A program made the position numbers and the translations under genes. The notes beneath the pieces were generated by a model. The model was not told where the DNA came from. It did not search any database and saw nothing but the letters and a program-made list of their open reading frames with translations. From Salpingoeca rosetta (taxonomy: Eukaryota; Protista; Choanoflagellata), in NCBI GenBank assembly GCA_033442325.1, contig JAWQFM010000018.1, positions 574,617 through 638,616 on the forward strand: DNA of 64,000 nt, in the 5' to 3' direction. Shown here piece after piece: positions 5,686-32,316 of this stretch (its first letter is position 1; each line of letters begins with the position of its first letter).

Positions 5686-8600
5686 TTGTGTCCTTGCAAG
5701 TGCATGAATCCGCGCTCTCCCCACGCCACGCACTTTCAGAGTTGACTTGAGCACATCTGTTGTCCACATGTGATTGTGTGTGCTTCCAGTTGAACGATAA
5801 GGGCGTCCTGTTTGTCGGCGGTGAATACCGCAGCTGTCTCGTCAGTGATAACAACAACAACAACAACAACAACACACCACCATCAACGCATCACGGGTAC
5901 ACTGCACACATACTCAAGTATGCAATGTACGACCCCTAGCCACCCCACACGCTACCTTCTGTGCATATCCCTTCTCCAACCCGTTGTTCGCACACACATT
6001 CACACATGCACACACACACGTGCGTACGGTTGCATTGCAGGTTGTGGTCGACGGGCGACGTGTGCGCGCGTGTCGCTGATGCCGAGCTGCTGCGCCGCCT
6101 CCTCGCCGCTGCGAGGACAACCGGACCGTTCTTCCAAATCTTGGGCCGCAGCGATGATATGGTCAGCGAGGAGTGGGGATGAGGGGTGTTACGGTTGGTG
6201 GCTGAAGATCTGGACGTGAAGTGTGACTGTTTGTGCCATGCACATGACTCACACACACGCACACGCACACGCCTGTGCACATGATGACTCACACACACAC
6301 ACGCACACGCATCTGTGCACATGAACACGTTCCTGCACGCCAGGTGAAAGTGCGAGGGAAGCGGGTGTGGCTGGACGCGGTAGCGCGATGGCTGAAGGTG
6401 CACTGGCCCAACACGCGCCATGCCGCCTGCCTCCGTTACCAGACTGCAGGCAGCGTTGCTTGCAGGCATCGGCTTGTTGGTGTCTGTGCCACCGACACTG
6501 AAACACCGCACACAGCAGCAGCGACAGCGACAGCAACAGCGGCACCGAACGAACACGTCGTCACAGGCGCAGGTGTGTGCGTGTGTGTGTGTGCGTGTGT
6601 GTTTGTGTATCTGCGCCAAACTAACATACGTCGTTGTTTCCATTTCATCGCCCAGCTGCTTCTCATCCATCTCCCCCTTCACGCTCGCACACACACACGA
6701 ACAGCCCTGTCTGCGCTCAACCGCCGCTTGCGAGAGATTTTTGGTGTCGATGTTGATGCCATTGTAACAACACCAACGCTGACAACCACCTCCCACGGCA
6801 AGGTGCAATGATGACGCGTTTCTCCTTCATATTTATCCATGATGACCTCACGTGTGGGACTGTCGATTGCAGAGATTACGGCCATCTCTCGCAAGTCTCA
6901 CATGCACGCGTGCTGCTTGTGGATTCCAGCTGTGTCAGCGCCACTACGCATCGCTCGTGGAGAAGAACATGGCTACACACAAGCACGCAGCTGCCCATCA
7001 TGTGAGTCAAACAAGGGTGCTTTGGTGTCTTGATAGAGCAAGGGTGCTGATCATGTCGTGCACATAATCTCACTCACCACACACACACATACACTCTCAC
7101 ACATACACACACATTGCAGTCGTGGACGCTATTGCGAGCGAAGGAGGTGTTGCAGTGTGCGATGGAAGCAGCGGGCGTGTGCGTCCCATCACCACTGGTG
7201 GCCGGCTGGGGTGCAGTGTCGTTTGCAAGCGCTGGTGGAGACTCGCTCGCGGCTGCAGATGTGTGCAGACAACTGGAGGCCGTGCCCGGTGTTGTGTACG
7301 CGGCCATGCTGCACTCCCTCATGAACGACACGCTGGACGCGTGCGCCCACAAACTGCTTGCCATGGCGACGCCTGCTGACCACCGCGGTGCTGGCAGTCG
7401 ATCGGATGTGACGCGGAGTGCTGACCAAGTGGCTGCATCCTCCAACATCAAGCGCCAACAACAGCAACAACAACGAAGCGAGGCAGCATCGGTGTTGGAT
7501 TCACCACCACCACCCAAGCAAGCCAAGATGCAACGAGGTCGTGCGACTGCACTCAACAATACCACATCAAAACACACGGCACCAACAGACAGCACACCAA
7601 CAGACACAACACCAGCAGCGTCAGTGGTGTTGTCACCGCTCCCACCGTCACTGCCGCCTGGACGTGTCATATCCCGCGTGTGGCACGCTCGCACTGCACC
7701 CACCACACATGATGATGACAACCAGGGCGCCCACAACACAGCAAATCAAGGCGTTTGGGCCTGCGAGAACGTGACTGTGGTGAGAACCAGATCCAGGCAC
7801 CCTCCTACACCCACCCAGACACAGACCCACACCGCGGCTGACACCGTCGCTGGCCCGGCCACGTCGCCAGCTGCTTGTTCGTGCCACGTGCGGTGGACGC
7901 AGGACATGGGTGCGTGTGTGGATGCAAGCCCAACCCTGCACGTGTGCGATGACGATGAGACGGGCACACATCCGCAGCGCCGCGTGTACATTGGCAGCCA
8001 CGCCGGCATCTTCGCGTGCCTGGACGCAGCGTCCGGTGCCGTGCTGTGGAAGGACACCTTTGACGGGCGCATTGAATCCGCGGCGTGCATTTCCTCATGC
8101 GGGCGGTTCGTGGCGGTGGGCTGCTACACTGGCGAGGTGCGCGTCTATGGCGGCGTCACGGGCGAGCGCTGGTTTTCCACGGCGCTCCCTGATGCAGTTC
8201 GATCGCCCATCCGCTACGATCTGGGGTCCCGCCTCTTCTTCGTCGCGTGCTATGACGGGCGCCTGTATGCACTTGATCCCAACCGCCGCACGTGCTTTGC
8301 ATGCCGCCATCCAGCGCCAACCACTCAAGGTGGCCCCCTCGCCGCCCCGCCGTGCTTGCTCAGATGCTTGCAAGCACCGGGCGAGGAGGGGGAGAGGGAT
8401 TATGAACGCACTCACATGGACACAGCCGTCGTCGAAGAAGGAGTAGCAGCCATATTGCGCAAACAAACAAGCAGTCCACGACACGGGTCTTCCCCTGTCA
8501 CCAGCAGCAGCACCAGTACCAGCAGCAGTCGAGGGACAATGGCACTGTGCATCACAGCATCGCTGCGGGGTCACGTGACGTGCTTTCAGTATGACTACGA

Positions 8601-9357
8601 GGGCGATGGGAAACCTGGAACTGGCGGAGATGGCAGTACTTGCACGATGCTGGAGCACCTGCTTTGGAGACACAAGGCCACCCACCCCATATTCGCTGCG
8701 CCGGTTGCGCTGGCACACGCGGGAAGCAGCCCGCCGCGTGTGCTCATCTGCCTGGTGAACGGGGTGGTGATGTGCATGCACGCAGTGCAAGGACAGTTGC
8801 TGTGGCGCTTCAATGCGGACGCAGACGTCTTTGCCGCGCCCCTCGCCGCTGTTGTTATGCCGCTGCGCTCATCTTCATCTTCCCGTGAAGACCCAGACAC
8901 ATCCACAGCACCAGCACCCGTGCCCTCAAGAGACAGAGACGAACACGGCAATTGTCGCGCGAGTGCCGTGACCACCACCGGCCAGTGGCTCATCATCGTG
9001 TGCACCAAAGCCGGGGCAGTCATTGCACTCAGTGGCCACGGGGATGTGCTGTGGCGACGTGCTGTTGGCGAACACAGCATCACCGCCAACGCCACGATCG
9101 TTTATCCCAGTGGAGATGATGATGATGTTCATGATGTGGCCCAAGTTGCCGTCGTGACGACAGACGGGCACTTGTTCTTGCTGCCGCTGTTTGAGGAGGA
9201 GCTGGGCCAAAGGGATGGCAAGCGAGGTTGCAGCCGTTCTGTGTGCCAGTTTGGCAGCCATGTGTTTGGCACGCCCTCGTGTGTTGAAGACAGCATGTTT
9301 CTTGGCACTCGGGATGACATGGTCATGCGGTGCGACATAACAAGGTTGTGTGAGTGA
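3510..9357 (+). CDS. AASDH: AASDH/ACSF4-like beta-alanine-activating NRPS-like enzyme (adenylation + carrier + PQQ-type beta-propeller), multi-exon
   Basis: Adenylation motifs across exons: YRVPTSGTSGAPK (~4400-4445), TFDPHVLD, GGEMFP, NIYGIT|E, WSTGD, GRSDDMV|KVRGKRV, TSHGK. Carrier motif GGDSL (~7235-7250). C-terminal propeller motifs VDASP, IGSHAG, GRIESAA, VGCYTG, VACYDG, LGTRDD. Start codon uncertain. Confidence 0.85.
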
Positions 9358-10020
9358 AACGGTGGCATGTAGTGTGTGATTGTGTGATTGTGATGTCGTG
9401 ACGAGGAAAATAAATGGAACGTTGTTAGCAATGTGTTGTGTTGTGACTTCGGTTTCCAAACACATTTTGTGTCGACACACCAGCGAAGCGGAAGTGAATG
9501 CGTTGTAGCCCGCATCATCAGGTCGGCATTTCACTTGTGTACAGCGTCACTGCAGCAGCTGAACGATTTACACGACTGTTGTACATGCACACGTGCAGCA
9601 TCTCATCTTGCAGGAATGCAAGATCAATCAACAAGAGGCTGCGCACCCTGTTGCGTCACCGCAGCGAAAGTGCCAACGACTGCAACTGGAAGTTCCTTTT
9701 ATTCTCGACGCGACAGAGATGAAGCAGTTGCTGGATGAACATATGGAGGCAAGAGAAGTGACGTGGGAGTGGGGATACTCTTCATGGTGCTGCTTTGGGG
9801 TCGGAAAGAGCGTGACGTTGTGTTGATCTTTGCTTTTGTGGACGGTTGTACAATGGTCAAGGGATCGAAACGGATGTATTGATGAGGATGAAGCAGAACG
9901 AGAGAGTCGACGCGAATGGTATTGAACGCAGGAGGACAGAATGAATGAGAACTACGACGGAGAAGTGAAGCACGAAATTGAACAATACTCAAAGCAACAA
10001 CAGCGTCACACACACAGTGG

Positions 10021-13000
10021 TCAGGCGTTTTCCTCATGAAATGACCGCTGCCATTCGCGCGTGTTGACACAAATATTGTGCCGTTCACCAAGGGTGCCCT
10101 CAGCTGCTGCTCGCAGCGGCTCCAGGTCGCTGTCGGGTGAAAGGTACGGCAGGTTGCTGCCTTGTGGGCAGTTTGATTTCAGCCAATGGATGAGGCCTGG
10201 TCCATCCAGCCTGCGGGTATCTGGCATCTCACAGCTGGTGGCAAGGCTGCTCATTTCCGCATCATTCAGGTGGCGGATCTCGTGCTCAATGTCCGCCAGC
10301 ATCTTCGCTGTCTGCTTCGCCTTCGGGATGTTCTTCTCTTTCACAAGCTCTGGGTCGGTCAGCAGCGTGAGCCAGTGCTCATGAAAGTACGCGAGCCTCA
10401 ATGAGCCAGAGTCTCCATCCCGGAATACCAGCTTCGACTGCTCCAAGCGTCGAACGTAAAGTTGATGCTGTTCCGGTGCTACGCCTGCGGGAGCAGTAAG
10501 TCGTTCCAAAGCCTCACTTGTCGACTTCACCGCCGTGTGAACAGCCCGTGTTGTGACGTCACGTTTCAGCAACACGTGGTGTTCTCGTTCGTGATCATCG
10601 GCACCGGCGATCAGTAGGCAGCGCTTCTGGAGTCGAAGTGATGGAAACTGTTTGTGCAGAGCGTCTACAACCACGAGCATGGCCAGATGAAGCAGAAATG
10701 AGTCAGCGCCCACCGCGACGACGTCCAGCACACGTCTGTGCTTGACATCCGTCACACATGTGGCCAGGTAGCCGTTGTCGCTCATCTTTGCCACAAACAT
10801 GCCCTTGCTCAAGTGCAACGGGTCTCCATTCAGCTCCTTCACAACATCAAACAATTCCTTCACCACGGCCGGCCAGCACGTTGGCGGCAGAAACTGCAGC
10901 TCGTCCAAGCACTGCAGACGACGTCCGGCAATGCCAGCGCCATGAGCATCGGCACGAGCGTTGAGTCGCTCGACGATCTTGCCATGCACACGTTTGCGCG
11001 GCAGCAGAGCAGGGAAGGTGTATCGCTGGCCATCCAGGCGAAAGCAAACACCGAAGGACGCCAGAAATGGAAGCAAACCCTCCTCATGCTCAACCGGAAC
11101 GTACACACCACGGCATGACAGCACACCTGCGGCTTCGGCACCCTCAACGCCAGGCAGGAAAGTACGGTCGCTTGAATCATCCGCAGCGCACGTCATCCTC
11201 AGACCATGAAGCGGGTGCAAGAGGAAAGCCATCAGCTTGCTCAGCCACGTGACTGGTTTGAGCACACACTCATCTTCATTAGAGGGGATACGCCGCAAAA
11301 CGCCAGCATCGTGGAGGAAGCCAAGAATCAGGTCACGGTCCTTGTCTTTGACAGCAATCTTGGATGCTGAAACAACGGGCCACCCCTTCACCTCCTCACA
11401 CTTCGCCAGCTTTTCCACGCCCTCCTTGATCGCCATGTACGCCTTGGCACTTGGAAGTACGGCACCCCTTGCTTGCGCAGTGCCCACAGCTCTGCATCCA
11501 GCGCGGTCAGATCTCCGCCACCTGGCTCGTCGTAGCGCGTGGCGAAGCAGCGGCTTCCAAGGTCAAACCGCTTGCCGACACGGCGCTGAAGTGTTTGCAG
11601 CAGATGCTGCAGGCCCAAATCCTCACGCGCACAATCGGTCTTGGTGGCGACAAGCCGCACTTGGATGGCATCTGCAGCACCATCACCGTTGTATGGAAGG
11701 CATGCCTTGAGCAGGTCCAACCAAACGTGAATGCGAGCATGTGCATGCTTGAAACCCTTGGAGGCATCGAACACCAGAATGTACACGGCCATGTGCGAGG
11801 CCATGAAGAGCTGGTGGGCAGGGAAGAACTCAAGCTGGCCAGCAAAATCCCACAAGTCGAATCTGGTCGTGCTTGTGGGGTCGTCCTCATGGTGTGTTTT
11901 TGAAACGCGCCACTCATCCACGTGAACGCCCTCTGTCCACACGTGTGGGATTTGGAGCAACAGCTGAAAGGGTCGCCTCCGACATGAGTGCAACGTCACG
12001 TCTTCGGCAAGCAGAAACCGGTGCACATCCGCGAGCTTTCGCTGCACACGCTTCACTGCCTGCCCTCGGCTCTCACTGCAGAAGATGTCGTCCTTCAGCT
12101 CCTGCTTCGAACGCGTCAGGAAATCCTCGCCCGTGACGCCGCGTGCGTCGAGAAAGTGCTTGTCGAAGAAGCCATCCTCTTGCGCAAGGTCCTTGTCGAT
12201 CCAGTGCCGAAAATCGGCCAGCCTTGACGATGGAGGGCGGTGGGTAGGCGATGGGATCGAAGCCGAAGCGGATGTTGGGAATGTGTTCGGTGTGGAGGAA
12301 GTCCGTGGTCAGGACGGTTATGCCGCAAGAGTCAAGGCTGTTGTTGCCGCGCAAGAGAGCACGGGTTGCATGTTTATCAAAACTATCGCAAGTGAAAGAC
12401 AGCAGTGTGTGTGTGTGTGTCTGTTTCACACAGCAGACGCAATTCGTGCCCAACACAGGAAGACCGCAACGTGGTCATGGACAGGCATTGTAATCACAAG
12501 AAGAAATGAGACTACAGGTGTTTGTGCAGCTGCACTGGGACATGTACATAGTTCACACCAACAGACACGTGCCTGAGTGACTGAAGGTTCTGCAGCTGCC
12601 CAAGTACTGGTACAAGTGCTCTCAGTCTCATGCCGTCAGATCCAAATATGTTACCACGCAAGCTGTCCAAGGCGAGGGTCACAGCCGTGCGTAGCGACAG
12701 GGATTGGGCAAGAACTATGAGCACAGCCGAACAAGGAACCGTTTGCACATGTACGCAAGCATCAACATGTTGCAAACATGATGCTGTGCGCACGTCGACA
12801 CAAGCACAACAAGCACACACACACACACACACCACACACACACACAACGCATCTGTACACAAGGCACGTGACATACTTGAGGGACTGTAGACGCTGAAGC
12901 TTCCCGAGTGCTGGTGCAAGTGCTCTCATGCCGTCAGGTCCAAATGTGTTGCCACTCAAACTGAGTGTTACAGCCGCATGTTAGGGGACTGACAGGATCA

Positions 13001-13563
13001 GCCAAGGGCCATCACACACAAGCACAACTTAGCGATGAACCATCAGTACAGCTCTGTAAAGAATTGGACATAAACATGAAAAGGTTGCAAAGGTGATGTT
13101 GTCAGGTACCAACACCTGAGCGGCAAACACAGCACACCTCAAAGTCCGAAAAAGGGATGGGTTTCTCAGTAGAGCCGTGGCAAGGTCTTGGCACGTCTCT
13201 TGCGACAGTCCGGCAGCAATTAAGCTTCCAGCACAGCATGCACATTGGGCAATGAATTACATGATGTAAGAGAAGAAGAGAGAAACAGCAATGATGAGCC
13301 AAACAAATTTGCTTGTGAGCTGTGCAGACCACCGAATGCATATCCAAGATAAGGCAAGAGGGCAAAACGGGAGGCACCATGTGCGATTGTGAGCATGAAC
13401 ATCTGAACATGCGGTTACACCAAGCAAGACAGCACAAGAAGCTAAGAAGAACTCACTTCACTGTATCTCCGCAGGATCCATTCTCGATGGACTGGATCAC
13501 GTTTTGAAACCAGATAGGAAACGTGTCGTCCTCCAGCGGCCCATCTTGACTTTGTGAGTCCAT
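10021..13563 (-). pseudogene. ROCO-family gene (RI-like LRRs - Roc GTPase with SAM-like insert - COR - C-terminal DED-like domain), disrupted in this sequence
   Basis: Exons 13563-13457, 13224-13138, 12960-12877, 12662-12573 (GC donor), then 12337 onward. LRR exons LSGNTFGPDGMRALAPALGKLQRLQSL and LRGNIFGSDGMRLRALVPVLGQLQNLQSL. Pre-Roc YPPPSIVKAG. Roc motifs TEGVHVDEW, RFDLWDFAGQ, VYILVFD, LVATKTD. COR motifs VP.AY, FLHDAGVL, WLSKLM, YTFPALL. No GxxxxGK P-loop; frame breaks at ~12218 and ~11445. Confidence 0.8.
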
Positions 13564-13624
13564 CGTACTCGTGTGTGTTGTTGTTGTTGTTGTTGTTGGA
13601 GTGTGTGTGTGTGTGTTGTTGTTG

Positions 13625-13689
<65 letters not shown>

Positions 13690-13837
13690 TGCTTCCTCTG
13701 TCTCCTTTTTTTCCTTCTTCCTTCTCCCCTTTTTTCCTTGGAGTGGCTGTTGCGTTTTGGCGGACGAAAGAAAATTCGCGACCACACTCGCCAGTCGGCA
13801 TCAGTTGCCTGCAAGCAAAACAAGCCAAAAGACGAAG
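13564..13837. promoter_or_regulatory. Putative shared bidirectional promoter/5'UTR region of the ROCO and DED-PNP genes
   Basis: Only 274 bp separate divergent ATGs at 13563 (-) and 13838 (+); about half is (TTG)n/(TG)n microsatellite. Confidence 0.55.

Positions 13838-21919
<8,082 letters not shown>

Positions 21920-22307: not shown

Positions 22308-32316
<10,009 letters not shown>

Follow-up and report, generated by a model that had tools for sequence, protein, structure and literature searches.

A probable decaying duplicate of a two-gene, immune-type ROCO/DED-like/nucleosidase module in the choanoflagellate Salpingoeca rosetta

Some ROCO proteins, DAPK1 among them, end in a death domain. 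Under the principle recognized in bacterial EAD systems, one small adaptor occurs twice, once on the NTPase core protein and once on an effector encoded nearby; bacterial Death-like domains are found fused to effectors that include PNPase (Kaur et al., eLife 2020 PMC7159879; eLife 2021 PMC8195603). Both the Death-like adaptors and effectors of the PNPase type go back to bacterial conflict systems (PMC8195603). In the sponge Amphimedon queenslandica, the Death-PNP protein DDAN is an ATP/dATP nucleosidase (Rousset et al., bioRxiv 10.1101/2023.01.24.525353), and fungal NLRs carry N-terminal PNP_UDP domains (PMC4986451). Here we analyze a stretch of 64,000 nucleotides, referred to below as the window, from Salpingoeca rosetta, a choanoflagellate and close unicellular relative of animals (contig C18:574617-638616). 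Its ROCO gene PTSG_06832 is read from the minus strand and its PNP/MTAN-like gene PTSG_06833 from the plus strand; the two lie head to head and share a domain of about 90 residues. The reading that we favor, at a probability of roughly 55%, is that the pair is a decaying and still young duplicate of a two-gene module that really exists in S. rosetta and looks like one of the immune type. In such a module, an LRR (leucine-rich repeat)-Roc-COR GTPase would end in the DED-like domain, and a divergent partner gene would encode one or two copies of that domain fused to an MTAN/Cap17-like nucleosidase.

A preliminary description of this DNA, made from its letters alone, had proposed that the two genes start divergently and that the C terminus of the ROCO protein and the N terminus of the PNP protein carry one and the same domain, and both proposals hold. 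The ROCO start codon is at 13564 on the minus strand and that of the PNP gene at 13838 on the plus strand; 273 nt separate them. When the two candidate domains (10024-10320 on the minus strand and 13838-14128 on the plus strand, about 90 amino acids) were compared, BLASTP aligned them with 17/42 identities and an E-value of 1e-7, and their local BLOSUM62 score of 79 was reached in none of 5000 shuffles (25.3 ± 4.7; z 11.5). Each window copy, used in six-frame searches of the genome, retrieves the other and about 12 more, and the genome holds at least 14 copies, whose alignment spans about 90 residues and shows a conserved pattern. We refer to this family below as the adaptor domain.

A profile of the adaptor domain searched against 1.84 billion representative proteins gave 15 matches, the best eight of which are all from S. 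rosetta: four ROCO proteins (two with TIR), a PNP protein with two copies of the domain, a STAND-like NTPase, an SMC-like protein, and a small protein with hydrophobic helices. The ROCO architectures are LRR-Roc-COR-domain in PTSG_05954 (the window gene, PTSG_06832, is annotated as Roc-COR-domain) and Roc-COR-TIR-domain in PTSG_09165 and the first part of PTSG_02681. Elsewhere the domain comes first and is followed by a STAND-like NTPase (PTSG_12916, with an NPHP3_N match, and an unannotated copy on contig C15 that precedes a WD40 open reading frame [ORF]), by an SMC-like coiled-coil protein (PTSG_07399), by hydrophobic helices (PTSG_09016, or P0014, 275 amino acids, contig C29), or, after a single or double domain, by a PNP (PTSG_06833, PTSG_05953, the second part of PTSG_02681, and P0022 of Microstomoeca roanoka). 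All PNP paralogues carry the adaptor domain N-terminally, and its recurrence on the C termini of ROCO proteins and on the N termini of STAND-like NTPases and PNP enzymes is what the preliminary description had led one to look for. The helices of PTSG_09016 are probably membrane-spanning, and within the same network this protein could serve as an effector that acts on membranes.

The predicted structure of the adaptor domain places it nearest to the death-fold proteins, DEDs first, in line with its earlier characterization as death-fold-like. AlphaFold2, run on an alignment of 14 sequences, produced a compact antiparallel bundle (pLDDT 88) resembling solved death-fold domains, in which DSSP assigns five helices (3-16, 22-31, 40-49, 67-77, and 82-95) and a long conserved loop at 50-66. 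The best true TM-score in a Foldseek comparison with the PDB, 0.59-0.68, is to the DED of PEA-15, with no significant E-value. At the level of sequence profiles, none of the 14 domain members matches Pfam DED, Death, CARD, or PYD at E-values up to 10, the EAD and bDLD families described in Pfam have no sequence match to the domain, and its profile finds nothing among PDB chains at E-values up to 10. Searches of the S. rosetta genome with the Pfam DED and Death hidden Markov models also returned nothing, although the control for these searches was uninformative, and structure and feature searches of the ESM Atlas with the domain gave nothing useful. We consider it likely that the adaptor domain is a death fold, possibly one homologous to animal DEDs. 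It differs from the tandem-DED proteins of animals and poxviruses (FADD, caspase-8, cFLIP, MC159, and PEA-15) in having no sequence-profile match to them, no visible RxDL motif, five predicted helices and a long loop instead of six helices, and no caspase partner.

At C15:316800-323300, the unannotated adaptor exon begins MERGSADANAALADV; downstream of it comes a long ORF in which a helical region and WD40 repeats make up a STAND/NWD-like layout. P0016, a 326-amino-acid protein encoded on a 17.4-kb metagenome contig from ENA (L049:8001-8981), has three tandem copies of a related domain (hmmsearch E 2e-6 and hhalign probability 75% against the S. rosetta adaptor). Its contig, with 22-27% GC, dense intron-less genes, and almost no Pfam matches (DUF5771, Hint), looks like that of a giant virus, and by analogy with vFLIP it is conceivable that P0016 is a tandem-domain viral decoy. 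The N-terminal helical region of the metagenomic PNP protein P0005 was considered as another relative and rejected (hhalign probability 0.1).

The gene pair recurs as well as the domain. Four loci have a ROCO and a PNP gene side by side, head to head in three cases and in tandem in one, and at all four the adaptor is found both on the NTPase core protein and on the effector encoded by the gene beside it, the arrangement of EAD coupling; in PTSG_09165 (Roc-COR-TIR-domain) the effector is instead fused to the core, another EAD-type arrangement. Closest to the window pair is an inverted duplicate about 90 kb away on the same contig (494800-501900), with about 86% amino acid and 90-93% nucleotide identity, which also takes in part of the Q-rich gene adjoining the PNP gene (window 22308-23906). 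The ROCO gene of this sister locus has kept its P-loop, has an LRR array about three times longer, and carries a 2-nt frameshift; the sister PNP gene, PTSG_06809, is a truncated pseudogene that has lost its ATG, is frameshifted, and is missing the initial 113 residues of its PNP domain. The pair on contig C15, PTSG_05954/05953, is more distant (41-50% amino acid identity), with about 496 bp between the head-to-head genes, and both of its members are apparently intact. On contig C4 a Roc-COR-TIR-domain gene is followed on the same strand by domain-domain-PNP.

The C4 locus (943500-948900) is annotated as a single protein of 1593 amino acids, PTSG_02681 (Roc-COR-TIR-domain-domain-domain-PNP). 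We read it as probably two tandem genes merged by the gene predictor, because the model removes helix 1 from two of the domain copies and because the downstream part has its own in-frame Met that aligns with the N termini of the PNP paralogues; the upstream part has a hydrophobic tail, after which comes a stop. In a tree of the domain, the first and second copies of the PNP proteins form separate groups (support 83/90 for PNP-d1 and 92/97 for PNP-d2), and the C-terminal ROCO copies are nearest one another. Since the copies tend to group by position and not by locus, the ROCO-C/PNP arrangement is older than the paralogues, and the loci did not arise independently of one another.

The nucleosidase half of the pair is identified mainly through its fold. 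The PNP_UDP_1 match is weak in the window (PF01048, E 0.002) and rises above the cut-off in P0007 and P0022 (E 5e-6). An AlphaFold2 model of exon 3 (pLDDT 70) matches methylthioadenosine/S-adenosylhomocysteine (MTA/AdoHcy) nucleosidases in Foldseek at E 2e-10 and probability 1.0, which gives it the PNP/MTAN alpha-beta fold; a profile of the PNP family has no match among PDB sequences. YEFE, GMIGVCGG, DMEA, and VSD motifs are conserved among the S. rosetta and M. roanoka copies, and in our reading of the alignment the conserved columns would correspond to Glu12, Glu174, and Asp197 of MTAN. The nearest ESM Atlas structures include bacterial PNPs fused to Response_reg, EAD1, Cap17-like_N, TIR, or WD40, which are conflict-system architectures, at TM-scores of 0.60-0.65, values that plain MTAN equals. 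The PNP also matches a candidate defence protein in PADLOC, PDC-M60C, at E 4e-8.

Like bacterial EAD systems, the S. rosetta family has a helical adaptor on an NTPase and on a separate neighbouring effector, its effectors include PNPase and TIR, and the coupling is proposed to be homotypic. Unlike them, it consists of eukaryotic, intron-bearing genes that are divergent or tandem and form no operon, its core is an LRR-Roc-COR GTPase, and its adaptor is without a Pfam EAD or bDLD match. The sponge DDAN shares with it an N-terminal death fold (predicted here) on a PNP_UDP_1-type nucleosidase in a holozoan protein of immune-like architecture. However, DDAN has a canonical Pfam Death domain and a measured activity, whereas the S. 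rosetta domain is cryptic and DED-like, and its nucleosidase, known from sequence and a model, has a paired ROCO sensor gene; no sponge protein is among the sequence matches. As in DAPK1, Roc-COR is followed by a C-terminal domain with a (predicted) death fold, but there is no kinase or ankyrin part, the nucleosidase partner is encoded next door, and the window copy has no P-loop. The head-to-head genes recall plant sensor/executor NLR pairs, and the use of PNP_UDP as the effector of an NTPase receptor recalls fungal NLRs, except that the fungal PNP and its NACHT or NB-ARC NTPase are parts of one protein and the S. rosetta PNP is a separate, adaptor-linked gene.

The earlier suggestion that this design has no precedent thus needs to be narrowed: the EAD principle and a sponge Death-PNP were already known, and what is new is the organism, the ROCO sensor with its nucleosidase partner, the arrangement as two genes, and a DED-like family cryptic enough that a survey based on Pfam would overlook it. 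The literature that we searched has no mention of these gene identifiers, and to our knowledge this would be the first ROCO-to-nucleosidase pairing.

If intact copies such as PTSG_05954/PTSG_05953 act as their architecture and the analogy with these systems suggest, then the LRR-ROCO protein would sense a ligand and oligomerize, and its clustered C-terminal domains would recruit the nucleosidase through a death-fold interaction. Induced proximity could then make the enzyme cleave the N-glycosidic bond of an adenine nucleotide, with ATP or dATP as the likeliest substrate, and the infected or damaged cell would be arrested or killed. Binding, activation, substrate, and immune role are all, in this proposal, inferred from architecture and analogy.

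The window pair itself is in a different state. Its supposed LRR-Roc-COR architecture is present in part: Pfam finds Roc (PF08477, E 8.7e-10), and the COR region is 41% identical to paralogue P0010 over 475 amino acids, which identifies it as COR even though its COR-A match is weak (E 0.008, under the curated cut-off, vs. 9.2e-17 and 2e-14 in the paralogues P0007 and P0012). An ORF of 488 amino acids is intact from COR through the adaptor domain to the stop at 10021. A deletion of 206 bp at about 12219/12220, however, has taken out the P-loop. Paralogue positions 13404-13609 have no counterpart in the window, residues 330-394 of P0010 have no match anywhere in it, and a motif scan across the window ROCO gene finds no GxxxxGK[ST], which leaves the G1-G4 set of Roc incomplete; P0010, P0007, and P0012 have all kept the P-loop. 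The LRR array is about 1 kb long against about 3.4 kb in the C18 paralogue, and no single exon of it reaches the Pfam LRR threshold, although RNI-type LRR-like exons are visible as ORFs and LRR matches are strong in P0010. The frame is broken a second time, by a 1-nt deletion between Roc and COR. That the two deletions, 207 nt in sum, might restore the frame was considered and rejected; the Roc segment between them would then be out of frame and run into a stop. The public model of PTSG_06832 steps over both lesions with unlikely introns, one of which has GTCACT as its donor, and RNA reads fall within one of these implausible introns. Intron 1, by contrast with these, is real: its joint at 13224/13457 (CT..AC on the plus strand) is covered by 6 reads from run X21. 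The window ROCO gene is probably a pseudogene.

The PNP gene has been interrupted (Table 1). Its public model, of 369 amino acids, starts at ATG 20635 and omits the 353-nt exon opened by ATG 13838, which lies on the far side of a long terminal repeat (LTR) retrotransposon. With the element and one copy of its target-site duplication (TSD) taken out, the empty site is an intron of 73 bp with GT..AG ends that would join 14190 to 20573, and the spliced coding sequence, with a second intron between exons 2 and 3, is 1524 nt long and encodes 507 amino acids without a stop. Both intron positions agree with those of the intact paralogue PTSG_05953, and P0022 from M. roanoka (452 amino acids, derived from a transcriptome) has the same domain-linker-PNP order; for these two reasons we read the exon at 13838 as the original first exon of the PNP gene, recently cut off by the element. 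Exon 2 is strongly basic, and the C15 and C4 paralogues have a second adaptor domain at that place; its lysine-rich stretch could be a nuclear-localization or nucleic-acid-binding segment.

Table 1. Features of the ROCO and PNP genes and of the inserted element, in window coordinates
Feature	Coordinates	Strand	Evidence
ROCO gene PTSG_06832 (LRR remnant, Roc, COR, DED-like domain)	10021..13564	-	ORFs, Pfam, P0009 mapping, ~44 RNA reads
C-terminal DED-like domain, in one ORF with COR	10024..10320	-	BLASTP; profile match to P0009 residues 626-717
COR region	10321..11447	-	COR-A E 0.008; 41% identity to P0010 residues 648-1117
1-nt deletion (CCC to CC), frame shift between Roc and COR	11448	-	nucleotide alignment with C18 paralogue
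Roc GTPase domain without G1 P-loop; DFAGQ and TKTD kept	11449..12219	-	Pfam Roc, motif scan
Scar of 206-bp deletion: P-loop (GDGGVGKT region) gone, frame shifted	12214..12220	-	paralogue alignment
Short array of RNI-type LRR exons, ~1 kb	12221..13224	-	ORFs, paralogue comparison
ROCO intron 1, GT..AG on minus strand	13225..13456	-	RNA reads
ROCO exon 1, begins MDSQSQDG; conserved in C18 paralogue	13457..13564	-	ORF, RNA reads
Intergenic spacer, putative bidirectional promoter, microsatellite-rich: (GTT)n, (TG)n	13565..13837	.	sequence
PNP exon 1: DED-like domain (13838-14128) and acidic linker; donor AA-GTATGT (cut after AA)	13838..14190	+	matches PTSG_05953 exon structure
5' part of former intron 1, ends in TSD AGCTC (14241-14245)	14191..14245	+	
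Ty3/gypsy chromovirus-type LTR retrotransposon, 6304 bp	14246..20549	+	LTRs, TSD, domains
Parts of the element	LTRs 14246-14995 and 19926-20549; gag 14841-15896; pol 15815-19897	+	
Assembly gap in 24/45-nt tandem repeat, gag-pol region of the element	16660..16759	.	
3' remainder of former intron 1, with the second TSD copy at 20550-20554; acceptor CACAG, then T	20550..20572	+	
PNP exon 2, lysine-rich linker, holds annotated start ATG 20635	20573..20755	+	
PNP exon 3: MTAN/PNP_UDP_1-fold nucleosidase domain, ORF intact	20932..21919	+	Pfam, Foldseek, alignment

RNA-seq reads were sampled over 9900-14250 from three runs, of each of which about a quarter was read; about 44 reads fall on the ROCO gene and none on PNP exon 1. 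Because the ROCO gene lacks a P-loop and is frameshifted, and the adaptor exon is separated from the catalytic exons, a module at this locus is most likely non-functional. The picture of a working sensor and effector drawn in the preliminary description is therefore supported in part: it fits the gene family and fails at the locus for which it was proposed, where the ROCO gene has these lesions and the PNP gene is split by the retrotransposon.

Several points limit the reading of a decaying duplicate of a real module. A complex prediction for the two window domains gave no answer (ipSAE 0.01, in a run made without alignments and with the fold of the partner uncertain) and counts neither for nor against binding, and the domains within one pair are just 27-34% identical. 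The four linked loci go back to at most three origins, perhaps to one ancestral pair, and are not independent events. PTSG_02681, as a probable merged gene model, was set aside as rosetta-stone evidence. The ROCO lesions could be assembly errors, although the old public gene models also step over these sites, and RNA depth is so low (the ~44 ROCO reads) that zero reads on exon 1 is weak evidence.

The first two of these points bear on whether the domain links sensor to effector at all. It might instead confer a shared property on its carriers in parallel, through a third partner, a small ligand, or a location in the cell, in which case the low identity within pairs, the clustering of copies by position and not by locus, and the complex prediction that is not positive are what one would see, as is the presence of the domain on an SMC-like protein and on the small PTSG_09016, whose C-terminal helices are hydrophobic. 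We consider this unlikely. The domain occupies the terminal positions on NTPase switches and enzymatic effectors that are typical of death-fold/EAD adaptors (PMC7159879), and the linkage of ROCO to PNP is tight, conserved, and found in two orientations.

If, on the other hand, the ROCO lesions were assembly errors or were spliced around, and a 6.4-kb intron containing the retroelement were spliced out, then the window pair could still work. The PNP frame that is intact over 507 codons and the intact 488-amino-acid COR-adaptor ORF are compatible with this, as are transcription of the ROCO gene and splicing of its first intron. Probable RNA runs from 2011 contain 0.29-0.34 of the sampled words of PNP exons 2-3, in unlabelled data in which RNA and DNA are indistinguishable. 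A working pair would, however, have to do without any GxxxxGK[ST] motif in its ROCO protein and to bridge a frame broken twice, for which the public model needs its two implausible introns and the GTCACT donor, and there are reads inside one of those introns and none on PNP exon 1. We think a working pair at this locus quite improbable.

That the PNP is an ordinary nucleoside-salvage enzyme, its ROCO neighbourhood a historical accident copied by segmental duplication, would agree with housekeeping MTA/AdoHcy nucleosidases being its best matches among solved structures and with a possible single ancestral pair behind all linked loci, but is very hard to credit given an adaptor domain on every paralogue, a lineage-specific family with fast turnover, pseudogenes, and a transposon insertion, the conflict-system PNPs among the closest Atlas structures, the PADLOC candidate-defence match, and a separate Pfam PNP_UDP_1 match on contig C35 that is possibly the housekeeping PNP.

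The inserted element is itself well preserved. Over 593 bp its LTRs, of 750 and 624 bp, show 99.8% identity, and a CT repeat accounts for most of the difference between them. The element is bounded by TG..CA ends and a perfect 5-bp TSD, AGCTC, and has a primer-binding site and a polypurine tract. The order of its domains, gag, zinc knuckle, reverse transcriptase, RNase H, integrase, and chromodomain, is that of a chromovirus-type Ty3/gypsy element, and it is apparently young and coding-competent, with one long gag-pol ORF. The assembly gap within it touches neither host gene. Since the repeat peptide TPKTQG is in the frame of the ORF on both sides of the gap and the repeat units are multiples of 3, it is plausible that the gag-pol ORF continues across; the assembly also has a gap at this point in the one other full copy, that of contig C6. 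Near-identical copies or fragments of the element are found on contigs C3, C6, and C12. Just downstream of the 3' end of the ROCO gene, at 7114-9357 on the plus strand, an ORF of 747 amino acids has repeats that suggest a beta-propeller.

Under the reading that we favor, the window copy chiefly illustrates the rapid birth and loss of such genes, and the intact pair PTSG_05953/05954 is the best place to study the module. A larger proposition is that S. rosetta has a working death-fold network, homologous to animal DEDs, that runs from ROCO/STAND sensors to ATP-nucleosidase/TIR effectors; we regard this as tentative and, taken whole, rather doubtful. If it were true, the logic of death-fold signalosomes would be older than animals, and a choanoflagellate adaptor joining ROCO/STAND switches to nucleosidase/TIR effectors would bridge bacterial conflict systems and animals. 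Because S. rosetta can be transfected and edited, ideas on how the cell-death and innate-immune signalosomes of animals arose could then be put to the test.

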